A stretch of DNA of 64,000 bases, from positions 1-64,000 of the forward strand of contig JAPDFW010000112.1 of the NCBI GenBank assembly GCA_028826165.1. The letters run 5' to 3'. The notes below the pieces were generated by a model, which saw nothing but the letters and a program-made list of their open reading frames with translations, was not told where the DNA came from and did not search any database. This document shows, piece by piece, positions 8,126 to 59,034 of the stretch (positions within the stretch are counted from its first letter, which is position 1; every line of letters starts with the position of its first letter). The position numbers were made by a program, and so were the translations under genes. Origin of the DNA: Anaeramoeba ignava BMAN (lineage: Eukaryota; Protista; Anaeramoebae).

Positions 8126-9303
8126 TTAACCATAATTCAAGCTAAAAATTTGATTGAAAATATAATATCCTCCATCTTGAGCAAGAAGAAAAGTTTCACT
8201 AAAGAATAATGGAGGTGTATTTCCTTCATCAAAAGCAATTTGACCAGAAACTAAAATTAAAACACTTCCATCTTGAATTGATGGTTGAGCAGCATAAGAA
8301 GTTACTTTATGTTCCAATCTTTTAAATTTTCGACTCTTTTTAAATTATTTATTAATTTAATTATAAAATTATTTATAAAATTATTTATTTAATTATTTAT
8401 TAATTTATTTATTAAATTATTTATTAATTTATTTATTAAATTATTTATTAATTTATTTATTAAATTATTTATTAATTTATTTATTAAATTATTTATTAAT
8501 TTATTTATTAATTTATTTATTAAATTATTTATTAAATTATTTATTAAATTATTTATTAAATTATTTATTAAATTATTTATTTATTTATTAAATTATTTAT
8601 TAATTTATTTATTAATTTATTAAATTATTTATTAATTTATTTATTAATTTATTTATTAAATTATTTATTAATTTATTTATTAAATTATTTATAAAATTAT
8701 TTATTAATTTATTTATTAAATTATTTATTAATTTATTTATTAATTTATTTATTAATTTATTTATTAAATTATTTATAAAATTATTTATGAAATTATTTAT
8801 TAATTTATTTATTAATTTATTTATTAAATTATTTATTAATTTATTAAATTATTTATTAAATTATTTATTAAATTATTTATTAATTTATTTATTAATTTAT
8901 TTATTGATTTATTTATAAAATTATTTATAAAATTATTTATTAATTTATTTATTAAATTATTTATTAATTTATTTATTAAAATTATTTATAAAATTATTTA
9001 TTAATTTATTTATTAAATTATTTATAAATTTATTTATTAAATTATTTATTAATTTATTTATAAAATTATTTATTAATTTATTTATTAAATTATTTATTAA
9101 TTTATTTATAAAATTATTTATTAATTTATTTATTAATTTATTTATTAAATTATTTATTAAATTATTTATTAAATTATTTATTAATTTATTTATTAAATTA
9201 TTTATTAAATTATTTATTAATTTATTTATAAAAATTATTTATTAATTTATTTATTAATTTATTTATTAATTTATTTATTAATTTATTTATTAAATTATTT
9301 ATA

Positions 9304-9353
<50 letters not shown>

Positions 9354-10154
9354 TTAATTTATTTATTAATTTATTTATTAATTTATTTATTAATTTAATT
9401 ATAAAATTATTTATTAATTTATTTATTAATTTAATTATAAAATTATTTATTAATTTATTTATAAAATTATTTATTAATTTATTTATAAAATTATTTATTA
9501 ATTTATTTATAAAATTATTTATTAATTTAATTATAAAATTATTTATTAATTTATTAAATTATTTATAAAATTATTTATTAATTTATTTATAAAATTATTT
9601 ATAAAATTATTTATTAATTTATTTATTAAATTATTTATTAATTTATTTATAAAATTATTTATTAATTTATTTATTAATTTAATTATAAAATTATTTATTA
9701 ATTTATTTATAAATTTATTTATTAATTTATTTATTAATTTATTTATTAATTTATTTATTAATTTATTTATTTATTAATTTATTTATTTATTTATTAATTT
9801 ATTTATTTATTAATTTATTTATTAATTTATTTATAAAATTATTTATTAATTAATTTATTTATTAATTTATTTATTAAATTTATTTATTAATTTATTAAAT
9901 TATTTATTAATTTATTTATAAAATTATTTATAAATTTATTTATTAAATTATTTATTAATTTATTTATTAAATTTATTTATTAATTTTACTGCAAATTCTT
10001 GAAGAATTGAATCAGTTCCTTTTGCTTGTCTTCCTTCATATGTTAACATAGAATTATCTCTATAAAAATATCCTATTTGTGTAGCATCTTGATCATAAGC
10101 TGGATAATAATTATCAACAAATTGTTGAGCAACAGTATCAAAAGATTCACCCAT
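8126..10154 (-). CDS. NTF2: Nuclear transport factor 2; exons 10154-9990, 8335-8126
   Basis: AQQFVDNYY...FYRDNSMLTYEG...ILQEFA|SRKFKRLEHKVT...LVSGQI...FSETFLL...YYIFNQIFSLNYG. A phase-0 GT..AAG intron joins the exons in frame (about 124 aa). Confidence 0.93.
8336..9989 (-). repeat. NTF2 intron (1654 nt) made of degenerate 12-13 nt A/T repeats (TTATTTATTAAA/T)
   Basis: Direct inspection; almost entirely A/T. Confidence 0.9.
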
Positions 10155-10500
10155 TTTTCTTTTAAAGAAAAATGAAAAAAAAAAATGAAAAAAAAATTAA
10201 AAAAATAAAAATATTTTTTTTTCTCCTTTTATTTTTTTTTCCCTTTTTGTTTTTGATGGCTAATTGTTCTAATTAAATAAAATAAAAAATAAAAAAATAA
10301 AAGGAAAAAATTTAATTTTTTTTTAATTGAAATTTATTTTTTTTTTCTCATTTCATTTTTTTATTTTTCCTTCTTCTTATTCTTTGTTTTTTTTTTTATT
10401 CTTTTTATCCATTTTTTTTTTTTTCAAATTTATTTCATTTAATTTTAAAACAAAACAAAACAAAACAAAAATTTAATTGAAAAACAACAATTGATTGCAA

Positions 10501-13500
10501 ATGATTAAGTTATATTTACTATTTTCTTTTGTTTTTTTTGGAATTGTTTTTACAATACCAAATCAAAAAGATGCTTTAGCTGATGTTTCACTTGGTTCAA
10601 CAGATGGTTTTACTTCTTTAATTCGTATTTTTATTAAATCAGGACCAAATGCAGAATTTGATACTTCAACTTCAAATTATAGGCTTGTTCGTTATTTTTT
10701 TATTTAAAAAAAAATTTTTTTTTTCTATTTTTATTCCAAAAATTACAATTAAAATTATAATTAAAATTCATTTATAAAATTAAAATTAAAATTAAAATTA
10801 AAATCAAAATTAAAATTCATTTATAAAATTAAAATTCAAATTAAAATTCATTTATTAAAATTAAAATTAATTCATTTATAAAATTAAAATTAAAAATAAA
10901 AATAAAATTAAAATTAAAATTAAAATTAAAATTAAAATTAAAATTAAAATTAAAATTAAAATTAAAATTAAAATTGAAATTAAAATTACAATTAAAATTA
11001 AAATTAAAATTAAAATTAAAATTAAAATCATTTATAAAATTAAAATTAAAATTAAAATTAAAATTAAAATTAATATTAAAAATAAAATTAATTCATTTAT
11101 AAAATTAAAATTAAAATTAAAATTAAAATTCAAATTAAAATTAAAATTAAAATTAAAATCAAAATCAAAATCAAAATCAAAATTAAAATTCATTTATAAA
11201 ATTAAAATTAAAATTCATTTATAAAATAAAAATTAAAATTAAAATCAAAATAAAATTAAAATTAAAATTAAAATTAAAATTAAAATTAAAATTAAAATTA
11301 AAATTAAAATTAAAATTAAAATTAAAATTAAAATTAAAATTAAAATTAAAATCAAAATTAAAATTAAAATCAAAATTAAAATCTAAAATTAAAATTAAAA
11401 TTAAAATTAAAATAAAAATTAAAATAAAAATTAAAATAAAAATTAAAATTGAAATTAAATTTTCTAGAGATTAGCTTATATTGCTTTTTATGGATTAATT
11501 CCTGCAGGAATTGGACTTTTGAGTTTTTTAATATTTTTTATTATTGAATGTTGTTGTTGTCGTGGTGTTTATCAAGAAGATGGAAAACGACAAGTTATTC
11601 GAATTCTTGCAATAATTTCTTTAATCTTTATTCTGTAAAAAGAAAATTCAAAATTTAAAAAAAAAATGAATTCAATTAACAAAAAAAACCCAAAAATTTG
11701 TTTCTACATTTAAAGTCCATTTTTAATACTTTCATTTGTATATGTTTCAAACACTGATAAGAAAGCACAAGATAAAACAAATGATATTAATGATAAAGCG
11801 AAAGCAAATGATGCTCAACTTTATGATTTTGGAAGTGAATTTTTCGTTCATTATGGAACACCTGGTGATTTAATTGCTTCATTTTCACAAAATTTCACAT
11901 CAACAAATACAGATAAAAAGGATTCAATCCAAAAATATTCCAAAATTTATTATGATATTTCTTTGGCTATTTTAGTTCTTGTGTTTCTTTCTTTCTTTTT
12001 CAGTAAATCAAAAATAATTTATTCAACAACTAATTTATTAAACAAATAATTTATTCTATAAATAATTTATTAAACAAATAATTTATTAAACAAAAAATTT
12101 ATTCTAAAAATAATTTATTAAACAAATAATTTATTAAACAAATAATTTATTCTAAAAATAATTTATTAAACAAATAATTTATTCTATAAATAATTTATTC
12201 TATAAATAATTTATTCAACAAATAATTTATTCAAAAATAATTTATTCAACAAATAATTTATTCAAATTTATCCAAATTTATCCAAATTTATTCAAATTTA
12301 TTTTAAAAAAAAATTAAGTTGCTTTCGCCATTTTTGGAAAGGGAATTAAATTTACCAAATTTTTCGCCTTCTTTTTGTTAATTTTAATTTGCATTATTAT
12401 GGGTGGTTATCTTGCAATTGCAGCTGGAGCCGAAGATGCCTTTTCTGCAGCAGAAAATCAAGAATCAGGTTAATATTTTAATAATTTAATATTTTAATAA
12501 TTTAATATTTTAATATTTTAATAATTTAATAATTTTAATATTTTAATAATTTAATATTTTAATATTTTAATATTTTAATATTTTAATATTTTAATATTTT
12601 AATTTAATATTTATATTTTAATATTTATAATTTAATATTTTAGGAATTGATTTTTTTGGTGGTTGTTTGTCTGATAGTATTCTGAATTATACTAATACAA
12701 CTTTAAGTAATGAAATTTCAGCAAATCTTGTTGATCTCAATAATTATACACAACCAACATATTTTGATCAGAATAATTATACTTTATGCAATGTAATTTT
12801 AAATTTAAATTTTAATTTTAATTTTTAATTTTAATTTTATTTTTAATTTTAGGCTTCTGAGTATGCTCCATATGTAACGGAAGTTGAAAATATTTTAAAT
12901 CAAACTCAGGTTTCTGTTACTTTGGAAGATGAATTTAATTCCTTCGTTTCTAATTGTTCATATTATTGGTCTATTTTTGAACCATATACTAATGATATCA
13001 CCCCATCTGCAGAAGTTGCTGCAACAGGTTTATTTTCATTAATGATTCTTTATTTATTCCTTACAATTGCTCTTTTTATTGGTCATGGAAGATGGGGTGG
13101 TGGTGTTACTTATAAAGATCCACAAAAAAAAAACAAAAACAAAGACAAAAACAAAAACAAAAAATCAAAAACCAAAAATAAATTTGATGTAAATATTTAT
13201 AATTTAATATTTATAATTTAATATTTATATTTTAATATTTATAATTTAATATTTATATTTTAATATTTATATTTTAATATTTATAATTTTAATATTTATA
13301 ATTTAATATTTATATTTTAATATTTATATTTTAATATTTATATTTTAATATTTATAATTTAATATTTATATTTTAATATTTATATTTAATATTTATATTT
13401 TAATATTTATAATTTAATATTTATAATTTAATATTTATAATTTAATATTTATATTTTTAATATTTATATTTTAATTTATATTTTAATATTTATATTTTAA

Positions 13501-15004
13501 TATTTATATTTTTAATATTTTATAATTTAATATTTATATTTTTAATATTTATAATTTAATATTTATAATTTAATATTTATAATTTAATATTTATAATTTA
13601 ATATTTTATAATTTTAATATTTATATTTTAATATTTATAATTAAATATTTATATTTTAATATTTATAATTTAATATTTATATTTTGAAATATTTTATATT
13701 TTTAATATTTATATTTTAATATTTATATTTTTAATATTTATATTTTAATATTTATAATTTTAATATTTATATTTTTAATATTTATGTTTAATATTTATAT
13801 TTTAATATTTATAATTTTAATATTTATATTTTAATATTTATATTTTTAATATTTATATTTTTAATATTTATATTTTTAATATTTATAATTTAATATTTAT
13901 AATTTAATATTTATATTTTAATATTTATATTTTAATATTTATATTTTAATATTTATATTTTTTAATATTTATAATTTTAATATTTTATAATTTTAATATT
14001 TATATTTTTAATATTTATATTTTTAATATTTATAATTTAATATTTATAATTTAATATTTATATTTTAATATTTATATTTTAATATTTATATTTTAATATT
14101 TATAATTTAATATTTATAATTTAATATTTATAATTTAATATTTATAATTTAATATTTATAATTTAATATTTATATTTTAATATTTATATTTTAATATTTA
14201 TATTTTAATATTTATAATTTAATATTTATATTTTAATATTTATATTTTAATATTTATATTTTAATATTTATATTTTAATATTTATAATTTAATATTTATA
14301 TTTTAATATTTATATTTCTTTTATTTTAATTAAAGGATCGATACAAAACTTGGAAAGATAAACAAAAAGAAGATCCTAAACCACCATTTCCAGAACCAAC
14401 AGGAGAAACAAGTTCTGATGAACCACCAAAGTACAAATCAAAATCAAAATCAGAATCAGAAAAAGAACAACAAAAATCAGAAAACGTAGTATCAGATCGA
14501 GAATATAATACTTTAAGAAGAGGAGATAACATTACAATTCCTCAAAACTTTATACCTGAAGATACAGATTCAGATCAAAAATCAAAATCACAATCAAGAT
14601 CCAGATCAAGATCCAGATCAAGATCCAGATCAAGATCACAATCAAGATCACAATCAAGATCAAGATCAAGATCAAGATCAAGATCAAGATCAAGATCAAG
14701 TGATTCTGGTTATGATTACGAAAGAGCTCAACAACAATTAGATTTAAACACAATGAAAAATAGAAATCCAGATGCAATCCAACTTGAGTTTATTAATGAT
14801 AACGAATCTTCTGATAAAGATAATATACATCATACTTATCATGTTGACCAACCAAATGGACAAGTTGATGATGCTTTGAAAAATTATAATCAAGAAAGAA
14901 AAAGTACTATCACTGCAAATGATGCAAGTATTTCCCAAATTTTGGATACTTACAAAAAACAACAGCAACAATTTGATCAATTTCAAGACCAACATAGTGA
15001 TTAA
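10501..15004 (+). CDS. Tweety/prominin-like five-TM protein with signal peptide and RS-rich cytoplasmic tail; exons 10501-10686, 11468-11634, 11716-12002, 12319-12468, 12644-12792, 12853-13188, 14336-15004
   Basis: Six GT-AG introns restore one open frame. FDTSTSNYRLRLAY-TM1-CCCCR, TM2, loop, TM3, TM4 (GGYLAIAAGAEDAF), GIDFFGGC, NCSYYWSIF...TGLFSL-TM5. The spacing resembles the Tweety family. Confidence 0.65.
10687..11467 (+). repeat. Intron filled with (AAAATT/AAAATC)n
   Basis: Hexamer tandem repeat. Confidence 0.9.
13189..14335 (+). repeat. Intron filled with ~15-nt repeat (TTTAATATTTATA[A/T]T)n
   Basis: Roughly 70 degenerate units. Confidence 0.9.
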
Positions 15005-16377: not shown

Positions 16378-19300
16378 ATGTCTTTTTCTTTTAAAAATAA
16401 TCAAACTTTTCCACAATCTTTTTTAATTCGTTCTCTTAAACAAATTCCTTATAAAGGAATTGCTTGGGTTAAATGGAGTTATGGAAATCAATCAAATCAA
16501 ACTGAAAAATCTTCTCTTTTAGGAAAAGGAAGTGTAAAATGGGATAAAAAAGATTCTATAAATATTTTAATTTCAAATGATGGAAAAAAATCTCATTTTT
16601 ATCCAAAACAATTAGATTTCTTTATTAATCTTGTATTTATTGCTCTTTTCCTTTTATTTCTTTATATTTACATTTTCTTCTTCTCGAATTTAAATCTAAA
16701 TCAAAATCAAAATCAAAATCAAAATCTAAATTTAAATCTAAATCAAAATCTAAATCTAAATCTAAATATAAATTAAAATATAAATCAAAATATAAATCTA
16801 AATCTAAATCTAAATATAAATCTAAATCTAAATCTAAATCTAAATCTAAATCAAAATCAAAATCAAAATCAAAATATAAATCTAAATCTAAATATAAATC
16901 AAAATCTAAATATAAATCAAAATCAAAATCAAAATATAAATATAAATCAAAATCAAAATCAAAATATAAATATAAATCAAAATCAAAATCAAAATTAAAA
17001 TCAAAATCAAAATCAAAATCAAAATCAAAATCAAAATCTAAATCAAAATCAAAATCAAAATTAAAATCAAAATCAAAATCAAAATCAAAATCAAAATCAA
17101 AATCAAAATCAAAATCAAAATCAAAATTAAAATTAAAATCAAAATAAAATCAAAATCAAAAATATAAAATAAAAATATAAATCAAAATCTAAATCTAAAA
17201 ATATAAATCAAAATATAAAATATAAAATAAATCTAAATCAAAATCAAAATCAAAATCAAAATCTAAATCTAAATCAAAATCTAAATCAAAATCAAAAATC
17301 AAAATCAAAATCTAAATCAAAAATCAAAATCAAATCTAAAATAAATCTAAATCTAAAATCTAAATCTAAAATCTAAATCTAAATCTAAATCTAAATCAAA
17401 TCAAAAAATAAATCTAAATATAAATCTAAATATAAATCAAAAATAAAAAAATATAAATATAAATATAAAAATCTAAATATAAATAAAAATATAAATCTAA
17501 ATCTAAATCAAATCTAAATCTAAATCTAAATCAAAATCAAAATCAAAATAAAAATCTAAATTTAAATCTAAATCACAAATCAAAATCTAAATCAAATGCA
17601 AAAATAAATATAAATCTAAATCAAAATCAAAATCAAAAATCAAAAATCAAAATCAAAATATAAATATAAATCTAAATCAAAATCAAAATTAAAATCTAAA
17701 TCTAAAAAATAAATATAAATATAAATCAAAATTAAAATCAAAATCAAAAAATATAAATCAAAATCAAAATATAAAATATAAATATAAATCAAAAATCAAA
17801 ATTAAAATCAAAAATCAAAATCAAAATCTAAAATCAAAATCTAAAATCAAAATCTAAATCAAAAATCTAAATCTAAATAAATAAATATAAATCTAAATAT
17901 AAAATCAAAATGCAAATCAAATCTAAATCCAAAAATCTAAATCAAAATCTAAATCAAAATCTAAATCTAAATCAAAATATAAATCTAAATAAATAAAAAA
18001 AATCTAAATCTAAATATAAAAATTTAAATCAAAATCTAAATCAAAATCAAAATCAAAAATCTAAATCAAAATCAAAATCAAAAATCAAAATCTAAATCAA
18101 AAATCCAAATCTAAATCAAAATAAATATAAATCAAAATCAAAATCAAAATCAAAATAAAAATCAAAATCAAAATCAAAATATAAATAAAAATCAAAATCA
18201 AAATCAAAATCAAAATCAAAATCAAAATCAAAATAAAAAATCAAAATCTAAATCTAAATCTAAATCTAAATCTAAAATCATAAATAAATCTAAATCTAAA
18301 TCTAAATATAAATCTAAATCTAAATCTAAAATATAAATCTAAATAAAAATCTAAATATAAATCTAAATATAAATCTAAAATCAAAATATAAATATAAATA
18401 TAAATATAAATATAAATATAAAATCTAAACTAAATCTAAATATAAAATCAAAATCAAAATCTAAATCTAAATCTAAAATAAAAATAAATATAAATATAAA
18501 TCAAAAATCAAAATATAAATATAAATATAAATATAAATATAAATATAAAATCTAAATATAAATCTAAATAAAAATCAAAAATATAAATATAAATCTAAAT
18601 ATAAATATAAAATCAAAATATAAATATAAATATAAATCAAAATATAAATATAAATCTAAATTAAAATCAAAATAAAAATATAAATCAAAAATTAAAATCA
18701 AAATCAAAATATAAAAATTAAAATCAAAATCAAAATATAAATATAAATCAAAATCAAAATAAATAAAATCAAAATCAAAAATCAAAATCAAAAAATAAAA
18801 TCAAAATCAAAATATAAATCAAAATTAAAATCAAAAATCAAAATAAAAAAATCAAAATATAAATAAAAAAATAAATCTAAATCTAAATCTAAAATTAAAA
18901 TCAAAATCAAAATCAAAATCAAAAATTAAAATCTAAATCTAAATATCTAAATCTAAATCTAAATCTAAATATAAATCAAAATTAAAATCAAAATCAAAAT
19001 CAGAATCAAAATCAAAATCTAAATATAAATATAAATCTAAATATAAATATAAATATAAATCTAAATATAAATTAAAATCTAAATCTAAATCTAAATCTAA
19101 ATCTAAATCAAAATCTAAATCTAAATCTAAATCTAAATCTAAATATAAATCAAAATCAAAATCTAAATCTAAAAAATCAAAAAAAATCAAAATAAAATCA
19201 AAATCAAAATATAAATGCAAATCTAAATCTAAATCTAAATCAAAATCAAAATCAAAATCAAAATCAAAATATAAATCAAAATCAAAATATAAATCTAAAT

Positions 19301-22210
19301 CAAAATCAAAATCAAAATCAAAATCAAAATCAAAATCAAAATATAAATCAAAATATAAATATAAATCTAAATCTAAATCTAAATATAAAATCAAAATCAA
19401 AATCAAAATCTAAATCTAAATCAAAATCAAAATCTAAATCTAAATCTAAATCTAAATTTAAATTAAAATCAAAATCAAAATCTAAATCAAAATATAAATC
19501 AAAATCAAAATCAAAATTAAAATCTAAATCAAAATCAAAATATAAATCTAAATATAAATATAAATCAAAATCAAAATCAAAATCAAAATCAAAATCAAAA
19601 TCTAAATCTAAATCTAAATCAAAATCAAAATCAAAATCAAAATCAAAATCAAAATCAAAATCAAAATATAAATCAAAATATAAATATAAATTAAAATATA
19701 AATATAAATTAAAAATAAAAATTGAAAAAAAAATAGATTCCAGATTCAAACCCAAATACAATTATAACTTCAGCAATTTCTTTCCCAGTTTCAGAATTTG
19801 CTCATATCCAAAAATCAAAAAAAGCACAAATCCCTTTAAAATTTAATCAATCTTTCAATACAAATCAAGCTTTTTTGGAAATTATTTTCTTTCCAATTTT
19901 AAATAATTCTCATAAACACTCTTTTTCTGCAAATTTAAAATCAAAATCAAATTTAAAATCAAATTCAAATTTAAATTCAGATTCAGATTCAGATTCAGAT
20001 TCAGATTCAGAATTAAATCATAAAAAAACCAATTCAACTGATAATAAAAATTTTAAATTTAAAGAAGAAGAATGGGAAAATAATATGATAAAATCAACAG
20101 AACAATTAATGAAGAATTTATTTGAAAAAAAAGCAAAACAACAAAATGAAAAAGAAAATGAAAATGAAAATGAAAATGAAAATGAAAATGAAAATGAAAA
20201 TAAAAATGAAAAGGAAAATGAAAAGGAAAAACAAAATTTAAAACAAAATCCAAATAAGAATATTGCTTCTAAATTAGAAAAAAAATTAACTCTTTTACAA
20301 TATCAATCTAGTCTAAATTCAATTATTGATTTGGAAAGAAAATTAATTACATCTGGACTTTATTTTACGGATGCAAAATATGAAAATGGATTCCCCATTT
20401 CATCCTGTTTAATTTTAAAAGCACTTGTTTATTGGGATGGATTAGGAAGCGAAAAGAAAAAAATAGTCGATGTTGTGGTCAATTCATTCCGAAATTTGAT
20501 TGAAGGATGCCAACAGGATATTTCCCAAATGAGCTGGGTTTTATCAAATTTATGCTTTATGATTAATTTAATACGTTCCTATCATTTCCAAAGTATAATT
20601 GAAAGGAAAAAGCAGAATTATCTGCATAACCAGAAAATTTCTAGAAAACCGGATTTTTTTTCAAATGTTTCAAACTTTCAAGAACAATTACTTGGATTAG
20701 CAAATGTAATTGTTTCTAATATGTGTCGTCTTATTAAAACTCAGGCATCTCAATCGTCAAAATACATGCTTGACGAAAATCAACAGGAAACAACAAAGGA
20801 ATTCAGCTCTTCTCATCCTATTGGCTTTATGCGTGGATTGTTGAATATTTTGTATGACAATTTTATACCAGAAATTCTTATCACAGCAATTTTTTCTCAT
20901 GCTATTGATTCCCTTTCGCAAAGTTTGATAAATCTCTTGCTCAATACAAAGGGATTATGCAGTTTTTCAATAGGAATCCATTTGAAAATTGTTATTTCTC
21001 AAATACTTGATTGGCTACAAAAATTGAAGATTCCTTACTCAAAGTGAATTTCCATTCAAAATCAAAATTCATTTATAAAATTTAAATTAAAATTAAAATT
21101 AATTTATAAAATCAAAATTATTCATTTGAAAATTCTTTTAGAACTGAATTTAATCATATGAAGCAACTTGTTGATGTTCTTTTAATGATTAAAAATGTAG
21201 CAGATGATTCTGAAAATGATTTTTCTGTATGTTCTGAAATTGGATCTAGTTTATCATTAGAAGAAATTTATCAAATTTTAATCAATTTTACTGTTGATCT
21301 GTAAATATAAATCAAACCAAAAAAAAATTTCTTTTTAAATATTTAAATTTTATTCCAATTTTTAAATAGTCATGATCCTGTTCCAATTCCTGAAGAAAAA
21401 ATACATCAATTTAAAATTTTCATGGAAAAAAATTCTCAACAAAATATTAAAGAAAAATCAATTCCTTCGGAAATACAAATTAATTACCATCATTTTAATT
21501 ATCCAGTAAATGGATGGGATGAAATTGAAGTTCCTCTTTCTGTTAAAACAATTCCTGAATTATCCTTTTTAAATCAAAATATACAAGTTTTAATTCAAAA
21601 ACAAAAAGAGGAAGAAAAGAAAATTCAACTTGGAAAAATACCTCATTTGAATGAAAATGAAAATCAAAATCAATTAAAAAATCAAAATCAAAATCAAATA
21701 AAAAATCAAAATCAAAATCAATTAAAAAATCAAAATCAAAATCAATTAGAAGATTCAGAAAAAGAAGAATATAGTGATGAATTTGGTAACGAATCTTCTG
21801 ATTCTGAAAAAGAAAAGAAACTTAAAAATCAAACAAAGAAATCAAATCAAAATTCCGCAAATTCTCATCAAAAAATTTCAAACACAATTGAAAATGATTC
21901 TCTTCAAATTAACAAAAATAAATCACAAAAAAATTATAATATAAATGATGAAAAATTTGCTAAAACTACTCAATCTTTTAATCAGAATAATTTTAATCAA
22001 TCACAATCAAATGAAGAGAAAATTGAAAAAGGAAATAAAGAAAGAAAAATAAATAAAAATAGAACAAAAAAAAAAGAACAAAAAAAAAAACAAAAAGAAG
22101 AAAAATTGAAAAGAGAAAAACAAAAAAAACCAACAAAAAGAAGAGCTTTTTTTAGTTGTATGATGAAAACTCAACCAGATGAAAAATCAAAAATGAAAAA
22201 TCAAAAATGA
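16378..22210 (+). CDS. NT-C2 (EEIG1/EHBP1-type) + Dilute (DIL) domain protein; exons 16378-16632, 19737-21043, 21142-21300, 21370-22210
   Basis: VKWSYG...GSVKW...ISFPVSEFA (NT-C2); WVLSN, LINLLLNTKGLCSFSIGIHLK, HMKQLVDVLL...LSLEEIYQILINFTVD (DIL). GT-AG junctions are in frame. Confidence 0.75.
16633..19736 (+). repeat. 3.1-kb intron of mixed hexamers (AAAATC/AAATCT/AAATAT)n
   Basis: Direct inspection; only a handful of G on the sense strand. Confidence 0.9.
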
Positions 22211-43725: not shown

Positions 43726-45390
43726 TTAAAAATCATCAGAAGATTCGAACCATTTATTTTCTGAATAATTTTTCTTTTTTTCAAATTCTGGTAAAGTTTC
43801 TTGTTCAATTATAATATTATCCAATTCTAAATTAATTAAAAATAAAATAAAATTAGATTTAATTTAAATTTTTAAATTTAAAATAAAATATAAATAAATA
43901 CCAATTTCATCTTGTTTTTTTCTAAATGGGATTTTCGATCCAATCATCATTATTCCAGCTAATATCAAAAGACCACCAGCAATCCAAAAACCTAATTTAT
44001 AATTTGCATCAAAAATACTTCCACCAACAATAGGACCAATAGTTCTACTTAAAGCCATTGAACTTTGAGCAAGTCCCATAATTGTTCCTATTTTTAATTA
44101 TAAAAATTATTTCATTTTGAATTTTAATTATCCAAAAATAAAAAAGTGGAATATTCCAATTTCAATTCAATTATTTTGATTTCAAAAAATACCTTTATCA
44201 GTTGTTTTTGTTGTGAAAGAAATTAAAGCCATAATGCAAGGTTGTCTAAAAGCAGATGAAACCGAAATAAAAAACATAACAATAATATCAGTAGTTTTAG
44301 TTGTAGCTTCAGGAAGAATAAAAAGCATAATTCCTCCAAATGGAACCATAACATAAACTAGTGTTTGTAAATGGATTTTTTTAGATAAAGCACGTATAGA
44401 TCCTCCTTGAATTATTAATAACATAAATCCAGTCATCATATAAATATATCCAATATTTGATTCATTCAATCCATTATTTAACTTGGCAACAAGAAGTGGA
44501 TAAGTAATCAAGAGTGAAACATATCCAGTTCTTGCAAAGAAAAAAGCAATTTGGAAACGAACAAGAAAAGGTCTTTTCAAAAGTAATCCAATAGCTTTGA
44601 ATGTTGTTAATCCTTCAACAGGAATTTCTTCAGCAATTGCAATAATTTGTTTAAATTTCATTTTCTTTTTAACAACATAAGTTTCTTTTAAAAATATTAA
44701 AGCAAAAATAAATCCCATAAGCGTCAAAATAGAACTTGCATAACAAGCTCCTTTTAATTCCCATTTACTTAATGCTGATCCTATTGTTGGTCCTATTGCT
44801 ATCCCAAATCCAACAACAGCTCCAGAAAGTCCTAAATATTTTGCTCTATATTGAATAGGAACTATATCTGTAATCATTGCATTTGCTAATGAATTTAATC
44901 CTCCAAAAAATCCAGTTAATCCTCTAAATAAAATTAATTGAAGTAATGTTTGACTAAATGAAGTAACAAATAATCCAATCATTAATCCAAATAAACAAAA
45001 TACTAATAATTTCTTTCTTCCAAATGATTTATCACTTAAAACTCCAAGAAAAAGATTTGATATAAATTGTGTTCCTGAATAAGCTGCTTCAATTATTCCA
45101 ATTTGTAATGCAGTTGCTCCAAATTTTTTAAGTGCATAAAATGGAATAATTGGAACTAAAATTGAAAAAGCAACAATTGATAAAAATAAACAGAAATAAA
45201 TTGTATAAACTGATGCTTTATCAAGTTCATCTTCTTCTTTTTTCTTTTTTGATTTTTCATTTTCATTTTCATTTTCATTTTGATTTTCATTTTCATTTTC
45301 ATTTATGTTCGTTTTCTTTTTCTTTTTTTCTTCAATTACAACTGAATTAATTTCTATTTCTTCTTCTGTATCTATTTTTGAATTATTCAT
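43726..45390 (-). CDS. MFS transporter paralog 3; exons 45390-44193, 44087-43902, 43826-43726
   Basis: Same motifs and intron positions; ends KWFESSDDF. Confidence 0.92.
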
Positions 45391-47501: not shown

Positions 47502-50416
47502 TTAAAAATCATCAGAAGATTCAAGCCATTCATTTATTGAATGTGGTTTTTTTGGTAATTCAGGTAAATTTCCTTCTTCTATTTTAATATCATTCATTTC
47601 TAATTAAATATAAATATAAATATAAATCAATTAAATATAAATCAATTAAATATAAATCAATTAAATATAAATCAATTAAATATAAATCAATTAAATATAA
47701 ATATATTAAATATAAATCAATTAAATACCAAATTCTTTTATTATTTTCATAAATGAAATTTTGCTTCCACACATCATTATTCCAGTTAATATTAATAATC
47801 CTCCTGATATCCAAAAACCTAATCTATAATTTACATCAAAAAGAGCACCTCCTGCAATAGGTCCAATTAATCTACTTAATGCTCCTGAACTCTGAGCAAG
47901 TCCCATAATTGTTCCTATTTTTATATTTTATTTTATTTTTTTTTAAAAAAGTGGAACATTCCATTTTTGTTTTTTTGAATTGATTTTTGAAATTATTTTT
48001 GAATTATTTTTGAATTATTTGAGTTTTAATTTTGAAATTATTTTGGAATTATAAAAAAAGTGGAATATTCCATTTTTATTTTTGATTTGATTTTGGAATT
48101 ATTTTTGATTTGATTTTGAAATTATTTTTGATTTGATTTTGAAATTATTTTGAAATTATAAAAAAGTGGAACATTCCATTTTTATTTTTGATTTGATTTT
48201 GGAATTATTTTTGATTTGATTTTGAAATTATTTTTGATTTGATTTTGAAATTATTTTTGATTTGATTTTGAAATTATTTTGGAATTATAAAAAAATGGAA
48301 CATTCCATTTTTATTTTTGATTTGATTTTGGAATTATTTTTGATTTGATTTTGAAATTATTTTGGAATTATAAAAAAAGTGGAATATTCCATTTTTATTT
48401 TTGATTTGATTTTGAAATTATTTTTGATTTGATTTTGAAATTATTTTGGAATTATAAAAAAAGTGGAACATTCCATTTTTATTTTTGATTTGATTTTGGA
48501 ATTATTTTTGATTTGATTTTGAAATTATTTTGGAATTATAAAAAAAGTGGAATATTCCATTTTTATTTTTTTGAATTGATTTTGAATTTATTTTTGAAAT
48601 TATCCTTGAATGATTTTGAAATTATTTTGGAATTATAAAAAAAGTGGAATATTCCATTTTTATTTTTGATTTGATTTTGGAATTATTTTTGATTTGATTT
48701 TGAAATTATTTTTGATTTGATTTTGAAATTATTTTGAAATTATAAAAAAGTGGAACATTCCATTTTTATTTTTGATTTGATTTTGGAATTATTTTTGATT
48801 TGATTTTGAAATTATTTTTGATTTGATTTTGAAATTATTTTTGATTTGATTTTGAAATTATTTTGGAATTATAAAAAAATGGAACATTCCATTTTTATTT
48901 TTGATTTGATTTTGGAATTATTTTTGATTTGATTTTGAAATTATTTTTGATTTGATTTTGAAATTATTCTAAAATTATAAAAAAATGGATCATTCCATTT
49001 TTATTTTTGATTTGATTTTGGAATTATTTTAATTTGATTTCAAAAAATACCTCTATCAGTTGTTTTTGTTGTAAAAGAAATTAAAGCCATTAAACAGGGA
49101 TGTAGAAAAGAAGATCCAAGTGAAATAAGAAACATCATAAGAATATCAGTACTTTGGGTTTTAGCTTCAGGAAGAATAATTATCATAATTCCTCCAAAAG
49201 GAACCATAATATAAACTAGTGTTTGTAAATGGAATTTTTTAGATAAAACACCCATAGCTGCTCCTTGAATCAATAATAACACAAACCCATTCATCATATA
49301 AATATATCCAATATTTGATTCATCCAATCCAATTCTCAATTTGAAAACAAGAAGTGGATAAGTAACCATAAGTCCTGTAAATCCAACATTTGCAAAGAAA
49401 AAAGATAATTGAAAACGAACAAGAAAAGGTCTTTTCAAAAGTAATCCAATAGCTTTGAATGTTGTTAATCCTTCAACAGGAATTTCTTCAGCAATTGCAA
49501 CAATTTGTTTAAATTTCATTTTCTTTTTAACAACATAAGTTTCTTTCAAAAATATTAAAGCAAAAATAAATCCCATAAGCGTCAAAATGGCACTTGAATA
49601 ACAAGCTCCTTTTAATTCCCATTTACTTAATGCTGATCCTATTGTTGGTCCTATTACAAAAGCAATTCCAAAAACAGCTCCAAAAAGTCCTAAATATCTT
49701 GCTCTATATTGAATAGGAACAACATCTGTAATCATTGCATTTGTTATTGAAATGAATCCCCCAAAAAATCCAGTAAATCCTCTAAATAAAATTAATTGAG
49801 TTAATGTTTGACTAAATGAAGTTATAACTAACCCAACTACTAATCCAAATAAACAAATCAATAATAATTTCTTTCTTCCAAATGATTTATCACTTAAAAC
49901 TCCAAGAAAAAGACTTGATATGAATTGTGTTCCTGAATAAGCTGCTTCAATAACTCCAACTTCTAATGCATTTGCTCCAAATTTTTTAAGTGCATAAAAT
50001 GGAATAATTGGAATTAAAATTGAAAAAGCAACAATTGATAAAAATAAACAGAAATAAATTGTTAAAACTTCTATTTTAGGTACTTCACTTCCTTCTTTTT
50101 TCTTTTTTGATTTTTTTTTTGATTTTTCTTTTGGATTTTCAATTGATTTTTCATTTGGATTTTCTTTTGATTTTTCATTTGGATTCTCTTTTGATTTTTC
50201 ATTTGGATTTTCTTTTGGATTTTCATTTGGATTCTCTTTTGATTTTTCATTTGGATTTTCTTTTGGATTTTCTTTTGGATTTTCAATTGAATTTTGATTT
50301 GAATTTTTGATCATTTTTCCTTTTGAGTTTCCTTTTATTTTTCTTTTCCTTTTTTCTTCAATTACAATTGAATTAATTTCTATTTCTTCTTCTGTGTCTA
50401 TTTTTGGGTAATTCAT
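47502..50416 (-). CDS. MFS transporter paralog 5; exons 50416-49051, 47914-47729, 47599-47502
   Basis: ATG at 50416 by homology (MNYPKIDTEEEIE); ends EWLESSDDF. Confidence 0.92.
47915..49050 (-). repeat. MFS5 intron 1: higher-order repeat of a palindromic TGGAA(T/C)ATTCCA unit plus 23-bp subrepeats
   Basis: 11 palindrome copies, spaced mostly about 84, 106 or 129 bp apart. Confidence 0.88.
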
Positions 50417-50706: not shown

Positions 50707-53179
50707 ATGTCAAATAAAAAATTTCCTTCAATTTATAAAAAAATTATTCAACAAAATAAAAGAAGAATTAAATGGATTTCTAAAGAATTAAAAATTACTT
50801 TAAAATCAATAAAAGAATTTGAAGAAAAACTTAAAAAATTATCTTTTCAAAAAGAAAAAGAAAAAATACAAAATCAAATTAATCATTTAATAGAATTTAA
50901 AAAAATGTTAGATAATAAACTAAGCTTTTTAAATGAAGGAATAATTAAACAAAAAGCAATACTTAAAAGTAGATTTATTTAATAAAGCAAAATCAAAATC
51001 AAATTTAAAATCAAAATCAAAATCAAAATCAAAATCAAAATCAAAATTAAAATCAAAATTAAAATCAAAATCAAAATTAAAATCAAAATTAAAATCAAAA
51101 ATCAAAATTAAAATTAAAATTAAAATCAAAATTAAAAATCAAATCAAAATCAAAATTAAAATTAAAATTAAAATCAAAAGCAAAATCAAATTAAAATCAA
51201 AATTAAAATCAAAATCAAAATCAAAATCAAAATCAAAATTAAAATCAAAATCAAAATCAAAATCAAAATCAAAATTAAAATCAAAAATCAAAATTAAAAT
51301 CAAAATTAAAATCAAAATCAAAATCAAAATCAAAATTAAAATTAAAATCAAAATCAAAATTAAAATCAAAATTAAAATTAAAATCAAAATCAAAATGAAA
51401 ATCAAAATCAAAAATCAAAATTAAAATTAAAATTAAAATCAAAATTAAAAACCAAATTCAAATTAAAATCAAAAATTAAAAAAAGAAAAAGCACAGAAAA
51501 ATCAAAATCAAAAACGTTGTAAAGAATTAAAATGTGTTTGCATTTCAGATACACATATGAAACACAACGAAATGGAAAAAATCCCAGAAGGAGATATATT
51601 AATACATTCTGGAGATTTCAGTAGAAGAGGATATGATTTTGAATTTGAAAATATCAATAAATGGCTTAGTGAACTGCCACACAAATATAAAATTGTAGTT
51701 GCAGGAAACCATGATCAAGGATTAGAAAATGAACCAGAAAAATCACTAGCAATATTATCAAATATAATTTACCTTCAAGATGAAGGAGTTCAAATCAAAG
51801 GATTTAATTTTTGGGGAAGTCCTTATCAACCCAATTATTGTCAGTGGTCTTTCAATCTTCCAAGAGGAAAAAAACTTCTTAAGAAATGGAAATTAATCCC
51901 AAAAAATGTTGATGTTGTTATTACTCATACTCCTCCTTTTGGAATTCTTGATCAACAAGTAAACCATGAAAAATCTTCCCTTAATCAAAATGATTTTGAA
52001 AATATTGGTTGTCAAGATTTACTTAAAATTATATCAAATATTCGTCCTTTATTTCATGTCTTTGGTCATGTTCATAGAGAATATGGCTTTATTTTTAAGG
52101 ATTCTACTTATTTTATTAATGCTAGTTCTGTTAATCAATATTTCCTTCCAAAAAATATTCCTATTGTTTTTATTCTTTCTGAAAATCCAAAAATTTTAAC
52201 TAATTCAATTGAAAATAAAAATAAAAATAAAAATAAAAATCAAAATCAAAATCAAAATCAAAATAAAAATAAAAATAAAAATAAAAATCAAAATGAAAAT
52301 GAAAATGAAAATGAAAATGAAAATCAAAATCAAAATGAAAATCAAAATCAAAATAAAAATATAAATCAAAATGAAATTGAAAATAAAAATGAAAATCAAA
52401 ATGAAAATCAAATTGAAAATGAAAATGAAAATCAAAATCAAAATGAAAATGAAAATAAAAATCAAAATCAAAATCAAAATCAAAATGAAAATGAAAATCA
52501 AAATCAAAATCAAAATCAAAATCAAAATCAAAATCAAAATCAAAATGAAAATGAAAATCAAAATCAAAATCAAAATGAAAATCCAAAAATTTTAACTAAT
52601 TCAATTGAAAATAAAAATAAAAATAAAAATCAAAATGAAAATAAAAATGAAAATCAAAATAAAAATGAAAATCAAAATGAAAATCAAAATGAAAATGAAA
52701 ATGAAAATCAAAATCAAAATCAAAATGAAAATCAAAATCAAAATGAAAATCAAAACCAAAATCAAAATCAAAATCAAAATAAAAATGAAAATCAAAATCA
52801 AATTGAAAATAAAAATGAAAATCAAAACCAAAATCAAAATCAAAATGAAAATGAAAATCAAAATCAAAATCAAATTCAAAATGAAAATCAAAATAAAAAT
52901 CAAAATAAAAATGAAAATCAAAATGAAAATGAAAATCAAAATGAAAATCAAAATCAAAATCAAAATCAAAATGAAAATCAAAATGAAAATAAAAATCAAA
53001 ATCAAAATGAAAATCAAAATCAAAATCAAAATCAAAATCAAAATAAAAATCAAAATCAAAATCAAAATAAAAATCAAAATCAAAATCAAAATAAAAATGA
53101 AATTGAAAATGAAAATGAAAATAAAAATGAAAATAAAAATGAAAATCAAAATGAAAATCAAAATGAAAATCAAAATTAA
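50707..53179 (+). CDS. Calcineurin-like metallophosphoesterase (MPPED/239FB-like) with N-terminal coiled coil and long N/Q/E tail; exons 50707-50968, 51486-53179
   Basis: CISDTH, HSGDFS, VAGNHD, THTPP and FGHVH motifs. A phase-1 GT..AAG intron filled with (AAAATC/T)n links the upstream ORF in frame; this exon-1 link is less certain. Confidence 0.85.
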
Positions 53180-53388: not shown

Positions 53389-55183
53389 TTACACAATAAA
53401 GAATTCCAATAGATCTGTAATAGAAATAACACCAATAACTTTATTATCTTTGTCAATACAAACAAGTCTTGAAACATTAATTTCTGCAATTTTTAAAATA
53501 ACTTCTCTAATAGTTGTTTCCAAAGTGCATGAATATAAAATAAATTCTGAACTAAGTCTCTTTCTTTTTTGGGCTAAAGCTTCTGAAATTGAAATATTTA
53601 AATCATCAAGTGATTCATTAACAATAAAATCCTTTTTTTTATAAATCAAAAATTTTTAATTGAATTCTTTTTTTAATTGAATTTTTTTTTAATTGTTACT
53701 GTAATATCAGAACGACTGAAAACATCTACTAATTCATTATTTTCAGAAACAACTGGTACTCCACTAATTCTTTTTTCAGATAATAATCTCAAAACTTCAA
53801 TTAATGGTTGATCTGATGTTACAGAAATAATTGAATCAAATCTCCCAATTTTAAATTCACCAAGTGTTTTATTTAATGCTGGATGAATTAATTCAAGCTA
53901 AAATATTATTATTAAATATTATTATTTAAATATTATTATTGAATATTATTATTGAATATTATTATTGAATATTATTATTAAATATTATTATTTAAATATT
54001 ATTATTGAATATTATTGTTAAATATTTTTATTGAATATTATTATTTAAATATTATTATTAAATATTATTATTAAATATTATTATTAAATATTATTTGAAT
54101 ATTATTAAATAATTTTTGATAAAATTCTTTTACATTATCAACAACAAATCGTAAAACATGTATATGTTTAATAACATATAAAATTGTTGAAGGAGAATCA
54201 GGATCAATCTAAATTAAAATTTGATTTTTGAATTAAAATTTGATTTTTGAATTAAAATAATTATTCAATAACACACAATAGGTAAACGATGGAAATGCTT
54301 TTCAGAAAGTTGTTTAATAGCATCAAACATTCGAGTTTGAGGATAAATTGAGATTAATTGACCAGGCATTTTTTTAATTTTTCTCCATTGTGAAATGGTG
54401 CAATTATTCATTTCATGAATTTTTTTCTGTTCATAAAAATAACATACAATATCAACAACATCAGTAACAGTTAACATCCCAATATATTTATTATTTTCAG
54501 AATCCCAAAGTGGTGCACTTTGATATTCTATTTAATAATTCAATTTAAATAAATTTTGAATTTAAATTAATTTTGAATTTAAATTAATTTTGAATTTAAA
54601 TTAATATTCAATTTAAATAAATATTGAATTTAAATAAATTTTAAATTTAAATTAATTTTCAATTTTTAAATTAATTTTGAATTTAAATTAATTTTGAATT
54701 TAAATAAATTTTGAATTTAAATCAATATTGAATTTAAATTAATATTGAATTTAAATAAATTTTGAATTTAAATTAATATTGAATTTAAATTAATATTGAA
54801 TTTAAATTAATATTAAATTTAAATAAATATTGAATTTAAATCAATTTTGAATTTAAATTAATATTAAATTAAAATTAATTTTCAATTTAAATAAATTTTG
54901 AATTTAAATAAATATTGAATTTAAATTAATTTTGAATATAAATTAATTAAAATATTAAATATTAAAGCAACTCACGTTGTTCTGCTAAAGCTTGAAAAGC
55001 ATATTTAAGCCTAAGATTTGTATCAATAACAACAACTTTCCCACTTTGTGGAATTAAATCATAACATTTATGAAGTCGTAAAAAATTAGCTATTATTCTT
55101 CGAATAAAATCAAGTTCATCAATTGGTTCATTTATTATTTCTTTTTTTTCTTGTTTTTCTTTATTTTCTTTATTATTTTGCAT
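53389..55183 (-). CDS. SNF4: AMPK/SNF1 gamma subunit (4 CBS); exons 55183-54976, 54527-54277, 54208-54134, 53897-53700, 53631-53389
   Basis: CYDLIPQSGKVVVIDT, AFQAL, SAPLWDSE...GMLTVTD, HRLPIIDP, RISGVPVV, VFSRSDI, GVISITDLL. Confidence 0.92.
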
Positions 55184-55416
55184 TTTTTACTTTTTAAAAA
55201 AAAATGAAAAATGAAAAATGAAAAATGAAAAAAATTTTAATTTTAATTTTAATTTTGATTTTTGATTTTGATTTTAAATTTTAATTTTAATTTTAATTTG
55301 AAATTCAAAATAAAAGTGGAATTAAAAATGGGAAATTTTAATTTTAATTTTTTTAAATTTAATTCAAAAAAAAAAAGGAGAAAAAATTTTTTTCATTTTT
55401 TTCATTTTCAAATTTA

Positions 55417-57931
55417 ATGACAACTAAAAAAGGCAAAGTTTTTGGATTTAAAATCACATCAGAAACACCAATTCATCCATTTTTACAAGAATGTGTTACA
55501 TTTTTACTTCAAATTCAAAATCCAAATCCAAATTTATTAGTTTCACAATTTAATAAAGATATTCTTAATTCAACAAAGAAAGTTATCAATAAAGATAAGA
55601 CTATTGAATTAGATGGTTTAGGTCCTGTTCTTGTTTCTGCTTTAGTTAAACAATTTTTAGCTGATTTAGTTACTCCTTTAATTCCAACTAATTATTATAA
55701 ATTATTCGAAAAAGTTTTAGGTTTTTATATTAATTTTAATTATAATTATAATTTTAATTATAATTTTAATTTTAATTATAATTTTAATTTTTAATTTTAA
55801 TTTTAATATTAATTTTAATTTTAATTTTAATTTTAATTTTAAATATAATTTTAATTTTAATTTTAATTTTAATTTTAATTTTAATTTTAATTTTAATTTT
55901 AATTTTAATTTTAATTTTAATTTTAATTTTAATTTTAATTTTAATTTTAATTTTAAATTTAAATTTAATTTTAATTTTAATTTTAATTATAATTTTTATA
56001 TTAATTTTAATTTTAATTTTAATTTTAATTTTAATTATAATTTTAATTTTAATTTTAATTTTAATTATTAATTTTAATATTAATTTTAATTTTAATTTTA
56101 ATTTTAAATTTTAATTTTGATTTAAATTTTAAATTTTAATTTTGATTTAAATTTTAAATTTTAATTTTGATTTAAATTTTAATTTTATTAGAACAACCAG
56201 AATCAGAACAAAATTCAGCTCTTATGAGTGTTATTGAAAAAATTCCTTATCCTAATCTTAAAATGTTGGAATTAATTTTGCAATTATTATCTCATTTTAT
56301 TAATACTGAAAAATTAAATGAAATAACTCGTTCAACTTTTAATATTTTTGGATCATTAATGTTTCGAACAGAATCAAGTGAAAATATGGATTTTATAATT
56401 TTTATAATTTCAAAGAATTCTAAAAGCGTTTCAGAATATATTTCACAAGTAAAACAAAATAAATATTAAAATATTATTAAATTATTAAATTATTAAATTA
56501 ATTATTAAATATTATATTAATTATTAAATTAAATATTAATTATTAAATTAAATATTAATTATTAAATTAAATATTAATTATTAAATTAAATATTAATTAT
56601 TAAATTAAATATTAATTATTAAATTAAATAAATTAAATATTAATTATTAAATTAAATATTAAATATTAAATTAAATATTATTAATTATTAAAATATTAAA
56701 TATTAAATATTAAATATTAAATATTAAATATTAAATATTAAATATTAAATATTAAATATTAAATATTAAATATTAAATATTAAATATTAAATATTAAATA
56801 AAATTAAATATTAAAAATATTAAATTAAATATTAAATATTAAATTAAATATTAAATTAAATATTAAATATTAAATATTAAATATTAAATAAAATTAAATA
56901 TTAAAAATATTAAATTAAATATTAAATTATTAAATTATTAAATTATTAAATTAATTATTAAATAAGCTCGAAAACTCAAATGAAGACATCCATCTTGGAG
57001 AAAAAGAACTCAAAAAAAAACTAAAACAAATCGAAAAATCCAAAAAGAAGATCGAGAAAATGCATACGATTTATTACAAAGAGAAGTTGAGCGACTTTAT
57101 CATCAACAAACAGAAATGCAAACAAAATATGAAAACAAACTGGATATAATTCTTCAAGAAAACAAAGAACAAAAAGCAGTTATTGACGGATTTCTTGCAC
57201 AAATCACAACAACTGAAGAAACCCATTTAACTTCACAAGAAGAATTTGAAAATATAAACAAAAATCGAGAAGAAATCCAAAAAGAAATCGAAGAAAAAAC
57301 AGAATCATCAAAAAAAATTGAAGAAGAAATTCAAAAAGAAAATTCAAAATCAAATGAACTAAATCAATCGATTCAAGAACAAAGAAATAAATTTCAAGAA
57401 CTGAGTCTAAAATCAACAGATGAAGTCGCCAATTTTGAACTTGAATATGATTGGAAAAATTTCTATATTTCTCAAATTGAACAAAAAAGAGATCAATTAT
57501 CTTTAGAAATGAAAAAATCATTAAAAAGAATGGATAAAATTCCTCTTGAAAAATTTCGAAGTCAAAAAGAACTTGCAAATTTAGAAAAAGAATTAGAAGA
57601 TGAAAAACAACGTTTGCAATCCGAAAAAACAATTTATAACTCAAGAAAAGAAGAATTCACTTCATTTCTAAAAGGATTCGAAACTGAAAAAGAAAAAATC
57701 AAAAAATCACGTCTTGAAAAGAAGAAAGAATTGTTTAATTTAGTGAATGAACTTGAAGATTATCTTAAAATTAGTTTAAATCCTCAAGAACTGATTGAAA
57801 AAAATCAAAAAGTTTTACTTTATAAACAAGATTTAACAAATTCTGTTGCAATTATTGAAAAACAAATGGAACAACTTACACTTCTTGATAAAGCAATTAT
57901 GCAAAAGGAAAATCAATTAAGAAATATTTGA
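55417..57931 (+). CDS. RhoGAP-like domain (no arginine finger) + long coiled coil; exons 55417-55720, 56192-56448, 56967-57931 (one base missing near 57012-57046)
   Basis: VFG...IHPFLQECV...VSALVKQFLADLVTPLIP...IPYPNLKML...IFGSLMFR. The C-terminus is heptad-rich. Confidence 0.7.
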
Positions 57932-58172
57932 GAATTTCTGTTTCTTTTCTTTTCTTTTCTTTTCTTTTCTTTTTTTTTTAAATGATTTTAATCCATTAAA
58001 TTAACTCAAAAAAAAAGGAAAAAATATTTTTTAAATTTTGTTTTGAAGATTTTTTTTATTATTAAATGAAAGGATTTAAAAAATGTCTTGTTTTTTGTTT
58101 AAAAAAAAGATTAAAATTGTATTTGGAAAGTTTTGTTTGAAAAATTCTTTTTTTTTCTTTTGTTTTTTAAAG

Positions 58173-59034
58173 TTATTCTTGTCTTTTTCCAATGTAACCA
58201 AATACAGCTAGAAATAGAACAACTCCACAAACAAAAAATTCTGCAAATTCTTTCTTATTTATTAAATGATTTTTTTCTTGTTTTCCTGAAGAGAATTTTA
58301 AGCGTACGCTTACTACAAATTTTAATATAAATTTAATTTTAAATTCAAATATAATTTTAATTTAAATTTTTGGATTTGATTTTAATTTTAATTTTAAATT
58401 TAATTTTAATTTTAAATTTTAATTTTGAATTTAATTTCAATTTTAATTTTAATTTTATAAATGAATTTTAATTTTAATTTTAATTTTAATTTTAATTTTA
58501 ATTTTAATTTTAATTTTAATTTTAATTTTAATTTTAATATTAATTTTAATTTTAATTTTAATTTTTAATTTTAATTTTAATTTTAAATTTAATTTTAATT
58601 TTAATTTTAATATTAATTTTGATTTTAATTTTAATTTTATAATTTAATTTTGATTTTAATTTTATAATTTAATTTTGATTTTAATTTTAATTTTAATTTT
58701 AATATTAATTTTAATTTTAATATTAATATTAATTTTGATTTTAATTTTAATTTTGATTTTAATTTTAATTTTGATTTTAATTTTATAAATTAATTTTAAT
58801 TTTAATTTTATAAATGAATTTACCTGTTAAAATGAAAAATCCAACTGCTGAAATAAAAGCAGCTAAAAATGCATTAAAAGGAAAATTTCCTGCTACAATT
58901 ACATAAACAAACATCATAATTCCTGAAATAAACTGCCAAAGTAAAAAAGCATCAAATATTTTTAATGGAGCTGATGTTTGTGTTCGATATTCTTGTATTA
59001 ATTTTTTCACAATTTGAAAAAAAGTTAATGCCAT
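58173..59034 (-). CDS. DAD1: Oligosaccharyltransferase subunit DAD1/OST2; exons 59034-58824, 58312-58173
   Basis: LKIFDAFL...GNFPFNAFLAAFISAVGFFILT|VSVRL...EFAEFFVCGVVLFLAVFGYIG. Confidence 0.93.

Follow-up and report, generated by a model that had tools for sequence, protein, structure and literature searches.

Most large introns of the protist Anaeramoeba ignava consist mainly of simple tandem repeats, and the orientation of C and G in these arrays is tied to the direction of transcription, strongly though not absolutely: about five-sixths of the arrays inside transcription units have their C on the sense strand. The window analyzed here is a stretch of 64,000 nt (positions 1-64000 of contig C113, in an assembly of 42.8 Mb and 147 contigs) with a G+C content of 18%. 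Its proteins match NCBI entries under the name Anaeramoeba ignava at 100% identity. The 13 arrays of the window with C or G are without exception oriented so that the sense strand bears the C (two-sided sign test, p ~0.0002) whichever strand the gene is on, as the initial annotation of this sequence had described. We attach roughly even confidence to the explanation that these are ordinary introns inflated by array growth, which multiplied a transcription-linked asymmetry of mutation or repair, and that they do not reflect a G-free code.

The wider survey given below is based on 264 kb, namely, the window and 200 kb of contig C1 (C1:200001-400000), corresponding to 0.6% of the genome. On this sequence, coding segments were called with a self-trained codon model, introns were predicted, and arrays were located with Tandem Repeats Finder (TRF); gene strands were derived partly from our own calls based on open reading frames (ORFs). 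Counts of C, G, AG, and GT in an intron refer to the sense strand between the splice dinucleotides. Exons were searched singly against Pfam and for homologues, each piece separately, and "transcribed" DNA was approximated by distance from coding sequence. The A. ignava genome paper reports 32,108 introns with a modal length of 76 nt and a maximum of 4168 nt, an intron G+C content of 8.14%, and boundaries that are almost exclusively GT-AG, in an assembly built from Nanopore and Illumina reads (PMC11550330). No mention of tandem repeats, G depletion, or array orientation was found in the searched passages and supplements of that paper (PMC11550330), and we found no description of G-poor satellite introns in the literature for A. 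ignava or other protists.

Tandem arrays fill most large introns

Arrays of at least 100 nt covered 31 to 38% of the DNA and 61 to 70% of the noncoding DNA. They made up at least half of 17 of the 24 predicted introns of 150 to 500 nt, 14 of the 16 of 500 to 1000 nt, and 15 of the 16 longer than 1 kb; put differently, at least 50% array was seen in 46 of 56 predicted introns longer than 150 nt and in 29 of 32 longer than 500 nt. The largest array intron measured 4168 nt, and the hosts were ordinary genes (MFS, BTB, NTF2, and rabenosyn-like). No unit-by-unit GT..AG was present on the sense strand of the arrays, and several large introns of the window hold 0 to 7 sense G over kilobases. All arrays reported in the initial annotation were recovered by TRF, and the base counts agreed.

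The intron of the NTF2 gene (8336..9989, - strand, 1654 nt, GT..AG) is a 12-nt A/T-only array with two C and no G. Hexamers of the AATCTA/AATCAA type fill the intron of the NT-C2/DIL gene (16633..19736, + strand, 3104 nt), which has 357 C, 7 G, and a single internal AG at 19002-19003. The BTB/POZ gene intron (23001..25936, - strand, 2936 nt) is built on an 18-nt unit (153 C, 7 G), and the intron of the MFS1 transporter gene (27359..29389, - strand, 2031 nt) is an AAATCT/AAAATC hexamer array with 217 C, one G, and 176 CT dinucleotides.

The large gaps are GT-AG introns

These large gaps are real GT-AG spliceosomal introns, with one seen spliced in a transcript, two others contained in the public annotation, and one that interrupts an NTF2 domain. 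All introns given here start with GT, end with AG, and are flanked by open frames that are in phase. In the case of MFS1, the mapped segments of the annotated protein P0001 are 29388-30905, 27174-27356, and 26985-27083, and P0001 and the transcript-derived EukProt protein P0003 both join 29390|27358. P0003 equals P0001 over the C-terminal 254 residues, a segment that spans this junction. Since the transcript-derived P0003 runs straight across the junction, we conclude that the 2,031-nt MFS1 array is removed from the RNA. The N-terminal part of P0003 consists of exact blocks of MFS5 and MFS2 and probably reflects a chimeric transcript assembly among the tandem paralogues.

The BTB intron is contained in the public annotation, where P0008 maps to 25937-26746 and 22329-23000 and thus joins 25937|23000. 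The NTF2 intron splits the Pfam NTF2 domain, its two exons matching domain positions 1-49 and 52-115. On contig C1, a 2.2-kb 18-mer array lies inside an annotated intron of the rabenosyn-like protein P0037, and the predicted array intron of 4168 nt has exactly the length of the longest intron given in the genome paper. The intron of the NT-C2/DIL gene runs from GT to AG in phase 0. Homologues that combine NT-C2 and DIL in a single protein align with exon 1 over the first half of their NT-C2. For exon 2, the first 100 residues gave no alignment to the NT-C2 profile and the first 160 no Pfam match, and the window's own NT-C2/DIL protein was absent from the results of the representative-protein search. 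Since the start of exon 2 is unalignable, this probable intron is supported by homologue architecture and phase only.

Array orientation follows the gene strand

The sign of the array orientation flips within 3.3 kb of the window, between the + strand gene at 16.6-19.7 kb and the - strand gene at 23.0-25.9 kb. Replication-direction skew was rejected as a cause because the orientation flips with the gene strand within a few kilobases. Across the 264 kb, arrays of at least 150 nt with a skew of at least 0.7 that lie between same-strand coding segments were concordant, with C on the sense strand, in 24 cases and discordant in 5, and looser cut-offs gave 34 concordant and 7 discordant arrays (p = 2.5e-5). 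When only strong, nonrepetitive flanking exons were accepted, the bias persisted at 21 to 7, and an origin of the bias from spurious array-derived ORFs was rejected.

The near absence of G from a single array is trivial in itself: with 92% A/T in the DNA, a short unit contains a single C or a single G. Consistently, arrays in divergent or convergent spacers are equally one-sided (e.g., 107 C and no G, or 5 C and 175 G). Since C-only or G-only arrays arise by amplification anywhere, what calls for an explanation is the choice of strand alone.

The initial annotation had gone further and suggested that introns are defined by an A/U/C-only alphabet. This is refuted by verified introns with 108 (C1:353145-354066) and 33 (MFS5) sense G, and G poverty is not an absolute rule either, as two verified introns on C1 carry G on the sense strand. 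In the one at C1:353145-354066, the sense strand holds 108 G against 3 C, yet AG occurs only twice and GT once; the flanking exons (ArsM-like) align to residues 82-203 and 208-249 of the arsenic methyltransferase 4kw7. The other, in a VPS13-like gene (C1:366577-367033), has 19 sense G and one C. Two more discordant arrays, of the TTGAA type with G on the sense strand, are intergenic and occupy spacers between same-strand genes (L005:4434-4643, equivalent to C1 244434-244643, and L009:5446-5759, equivalent to C1 285446-285759). One of these two arrays starts 46 nt past the stop codon of the rabenosyn-like gene. Discordant and concordant arrays sit side by side, and the genes of C1 are clustered by strand.

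A short intron grew in place by repeat amplification

Five tandem MFS paralogues share one common intron position, with intron lengths of 68, 105, 254, 1136, and 2031 nt. The intron ends are nearly alike, reading GTATTTTT or GTAAATTT on the 5' side and AAAAATAG on the 3' side. Besides MFS1, the set comprises four introns on the - strand. The MFS2 copy (41393..41460, 68 nt, by mapping of P0002) is unexpanded and has the ends GTATTTTT..AAAAATAG. That of MFS3 (44088..44192, 105 nt, P0006) contains 8 G and 5 C, and that of MFS4 (45907..46160, 254 nt, P0005) is an (AAATC)n array with 29 C and 4 G. The MFS5 copy (47915..49050, 1136 nt, P0004) is made of 23-, 84-, and 106-nt units and has 143 C, 33 G, 2 AG, and 6 GT on its sense strand. 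Because the paralogues keep position and ends while the length varies, we conclude that a short intron grew in place by repeat amplification. An origin from introners or transposons was rejected, since position and ends are conserved at lengths from 68 to 2031 nt and matches elsewhere were only to the simple repeat.

Two further observations concern this gene cluster. The palindrome GGAATATTCC occurs in the MFS3 and MFS5 introns, with many copies in MFS5, where it is the source of most of the sense-strand G. The final annotated exon of P0004 (MFS5) and that of P0005 (MFS4) both have their exact match at 45542-45637 (- strand); either MFS4 and MFS5 end in identical exons, or the MFS5 gene model has taken over the exon of MFS4.

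The repeat units had been described as private to each intron. This is overstated, as two of the three arrays tested recur at many loci: the AATCTA-type unit is common to the NT-C2/DIL and MFS1 introns and to more than 20 other contigs (85 to 89% identity), and the NTF2 12-mer has matches at 88 to 94% on other contigs. The exception is the BTB 18-mer, which had no outside match above 81%, compared with 86 to 89% within the array. Similarity between units this simple is no proof of shared ancestry, but the units are still not confined to a single intron.

A modest C-over-G skew covers transcription units

Sense C/G in predicted introns was 1.66 for short, 1.9 for mid-sized, and 2.3 for long introns, with A/T at ~1.2; short introns contained 2.8% G. 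Flanks taken from convergent and divergent gene pairs had a C/G of 1.3 to 1.6 at 0 to 200 nt from coding sequence, on both the 5' and the 3' sides, and of ~1.0 beyond 200 nt. A modest excess of C over G hence covers the noncoding parts of transcription units as a whole and fades outside them. Stray C and G within A/T-only arrays stood at a ratio of ~1.6 (hand tally), and among rare derived variants inside arrays, the per-site rate was 0.035 for T>C and 0.019 for A>G (p = 0.07).

The window has array examples in 3' flanks as well. The array in the MFS3 3' flank (43367..43589, - strand, 12-nt unit, 10 C and 1 G) and the one in the 3' flank of the SPRY/CTLH gene (59117..59492, - strand, CAAATT hexamer, 57 C and 2 G) carry the same skew as the introns, in agreement with the initial annotation. 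Transcription-linked bias had been offered there as the alternative to a rule of splicing, to be favored if untranslated regions were equally skewed and introns showed no extra AG depletion. We found equal skew in flanks within 200 nt and no extra depletion of AG in introns, and this test therefore favors mutation bias.

In predicted introns, the composition differs near the 3' end: 87 G versus 83 C were counted in the ~37 nt that precede the 3' splice site, and farther upstream C is about twice as frequent as G. Mis-set acceptors may contribute to this. A CTAAT-like branch motif was considered as the origin of the C and rejected, as C is not enriched in the final ~37 nt.

AG and GT are not specially avoided at single sites

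We examined isolated G and C in an A/T-only context (±4 nt), counting distinct contexts and normalizing by the A/T parent triplets. The normalized sense G/C was 0.68 for AGA, 0.83 for AGT, 0.51 for TGA, and 0.56 for TGT, with overlapping bootstrap intervals. There was no single-site depletion specific to AG or GT, the harmless TGA being at least as depleted as the hazardous contexts, which argues against avoidance of splice dinucleotides as the main cause. AG was also about as frequent as its mirror, CT, in predicted introns. Beyond GT and AG, the splice-site profiles show hardly anything but an A/T background.

At the level of arrays, the picture was somewhat different. Arrays whose C lies in CT or AC, and which would produce AG or GT if inverted, were concordant in 19 cases and discordant in one, versus 15 and 6 for TCA/TGA-type arrays (one-sided Fisher test, p = 0.053). 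All five long discordant arrays are of the TGA type. By a second criterion, sense AG was amplified in 2 arrays versus CT in 8, and GT in 2 versus AC in 5 (p = 0.11 and 0.45). The TGA-type arrays, at 71% concordance, were not more biased than expected from background seeding. The proposal that expansions are tolerated only where they create no AG or GU thus finds some backing in arrays (19:1 against 15:6) and none at single sites. Selection against arrays that multiply AG or GT is possible but unproven, the data being suggestive only.

Weighing of explanations

In the explanation that we favor, slippage-type tandem amplification of short A/T-rich units would have enlarged ordinary GT-AG introns and intergenic spacers in place, as the five MFS paralogues suggest. 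A unit of 5 to 20 nt drawn from ~92% A/T DNA holds at most one C or G, so that the resulting array is C-only or G-only on a given strand. The general sense excess found within ~200 nt of coding sequence, ~1.3- to 1.7-fold for C over G and ~1.2-fold for A over T, would stem from a transcription-linked asymmetry of mutation or repair, and amplification of the seeds would multiply it. A second layer may be purifying selection, acting on arrays that would load the pre-mRNA with AG or GT. Several points weigh against this explanation. Arrays were 83% concordant, compared to the ~62% expected from background seeding (p ~0.005 to 0.02), and the excess sits in those arrays that would make AG or GT if inverted, as selection would predict. 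Four-fold sites in exons had a C/G of only 1.23. With A and C in excess on the sense strand, the skew runs counter to that of human and mouse introns (PMC10030826), and we know of no mutational mechanism shown to account for it. The sample is also small, at 264 kb of 42.8 Mb, with strands assigned by ORF-based calls.

Selection by the splicing machinery, for which any G on the pre-mRNA would be a potential cryptic site and only arrays that multiply no AG or GU could grow, appears rather unlikely to us. The array counts given above speak for it, including the TGA type of all five long discordant arrays, as do the paucity of AG and GT in the verified intron with 108 G and splice profiles that hold little beyond GT and AG. 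However, the single-site deficit of G is no greater in AG or GT than in the harmless TGA, AG and CT are similarly frequent in predicted introns, and the final ~37 nt of introns, the stretch in which an AG would have the greatest effect, show no depletion of G. The array tests are moreover borderline and depend on the criterion, and TGA-type arrays lean 15 to 6 even though they are harmless in either orientation. A context-independent selection against G in nascent noncoding RNA or on the nontemplate strand, limiting R-loops or RNA structure, would account for a deficit that is indifferent to context, tied to the direction of transcription, and strongest in long arrays, and GC skew is known to favor R-loop formation (reviewed in PMC10030826). 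Nevertheless, inverted arrays would reach only ~5 to 12% G, far from what is prone to form R-loops or G4 structures, and arrays with sense G exist in verified introns; we regard this explanation as improbable.

A strict A/U/C-only alphabet, by which introns would be recognized through their lack of G, deserves next to no credence. Several large introns of the window do have only 0 to 7 G in 1.6 to 3.1 kb, but verified introns with 108, 33, 19, and 8 sense G, the 2.8% G of short introns, and the equally one-sided intergenic arrays contradict it. It is also very unlikely that the pattern has no link to transcription and stems from chance, replication direction, or assembly. Each gene block offers few independent arrays, and the clustering of C1 genes by strand would be compatible with such an origin, but the sign test (p = 2.5e-5), the flip with gene strand within 3.3 kb, and the adjoining of discordant and concordant arrays speak against it. 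As for an assembly artifact, the predicted 4168-nt array intron has the length of the longest intron reported in the genome paper, and long reads were used in the assembly (PMC11550330).

Comparison with known systems

Human and mouse introns show a transcription-associated asymmetry with G over C and T over A on the sense strand (PMC10030826). The A. ignava skew is similar in that it follows the direction of transcription in noncoding transcribed DNA, and it differs in sign, with C over G and A over T (PMC10030826). It may thus report a different balance of strand-specific damage and repair. Unlike in human and mouse, amplification in A. ignava turns a ~1.6-fold skew into near-absolute, one-sided blocks of kilobase size. 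Giant introns filled with satellites are found in the Y-linked fertility genes kl-3 and kl-5 of Drosophila, where the repeats are transcribed with the gene, and the A. ignava introns resemble them in consisting almost wholly of simple tandem repeats (PMC6508621). The Drosophila Y introns extend over megabases in a handful of testis genes that have a dedicated expression program (PMC6508621). The A. ignava introns, by contrast, measure 0.2 to 4.2 kb, occur in ordinary genes genome-wide, and have a sense-strand orientation bias.

Avoidance of cryptic splice sites, with an AG-exclusion zone upstream of 3' splice sites, implies that AG and GU are counterselected inside introns. Unlike this expectation, A. 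ignava has no AG-specific deficit at single sites or near the 3' end, and only a borderline deficit of arrays that multiply AG or GT. Dictyostelium and Plasmodium are, like A. ignava, extremely A/T-rich and have many short tandem repeats in their noncoding DNA, and their introns are short; we know of no report of kilobase, intron-filling arrays with a strand-orientation rule. The introns of A. flamelloides show no depletion of G+C. With its thousands of arrays, A. ignava provides a natural experiment on whether splice signals limit the expansion of repeats within genes. The idea that splice grammar polices satellite growth in introns of ~92% A/T, so that arrays expand only in an orientation or with a unit that lacks AG and GU, is in our view doubtful. 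If it were true, G would be the punctuation letter of splicing, and the constraint on repeat expansion would be one undescribed elsewhere.

Other arrays and features of the window

The remaining arrays of the window lie in or next to further predicted genes. A putative intron at 10687..11467 (+ strand), predicted with weak splice scores, is an AAAATT/AAAATC hexamer array with 26 C and 3 G. Two predicted introns follow on the same strand, one of 175 nt (12469..12643) that is a TTAATATT array without C or G and one of 1147 nt (13189..14335) with a 14-nt A/T unit, 1 C, and 2 G. The AAATCA hexamer array at 50984..51474 lies between + strand coding segments and may be an intron (53 C, 3 G). The predicted intron at 53898..54133 (- strand, 236 nt) has a 13-nt unit with 8 C and 1 G, and the array at 54542..54948, between - strand exons, has a 17-nt unit with 17 C and 5 G. 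On the + strand, a predicted intron of 471 nt (55721..56191) is a TTTTAA array with no C and 3 G, and an A/T-only array of 7/19-nt units is located between exons at 56460..56964. An AATTTT-type array adjoins a - strand exon at 58318..58810 (11 C, 2 G). Pfam searches with the tested exon pieces did not recover the label "Tweety-like" that had been given to one gene of the window.

An array of the (AATC)n/(CAAC)n type at 38214-38736 (+ strand), in a divergent spacer, has 32% C and 2 G. Downstream of it, at a distance of 38 nt, is the first coding segment of a + strand RCC1-BTB gene, and the array could be 5' untranslated region, intron, or promoter DNA. At 3438-3526 (- strand), an 89-nt T-rich run, which is A-rich on the gene strand and has 72% matches to a poly-T unit by TRF, forms the meeting point of two overlapping open frames in the large gene at 372-7034. 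This run may be an intron, or it may mark a frameshift from a homopolymer error in the assembly.

The SPRY/CTLH gene contains ~73 copies of a 24-nt coding repeat that is G-rich on the sense strand (60017-61834, - strand, within the ORF at 59498-63436). Each unit has a GTAAGT, which looks like a strong 5' splice site, as well as several AG, and the ORF stays open for 1312 codons. If this repeat is truly exonic, dozens of consensus-like donors would be tolerated within an exon.

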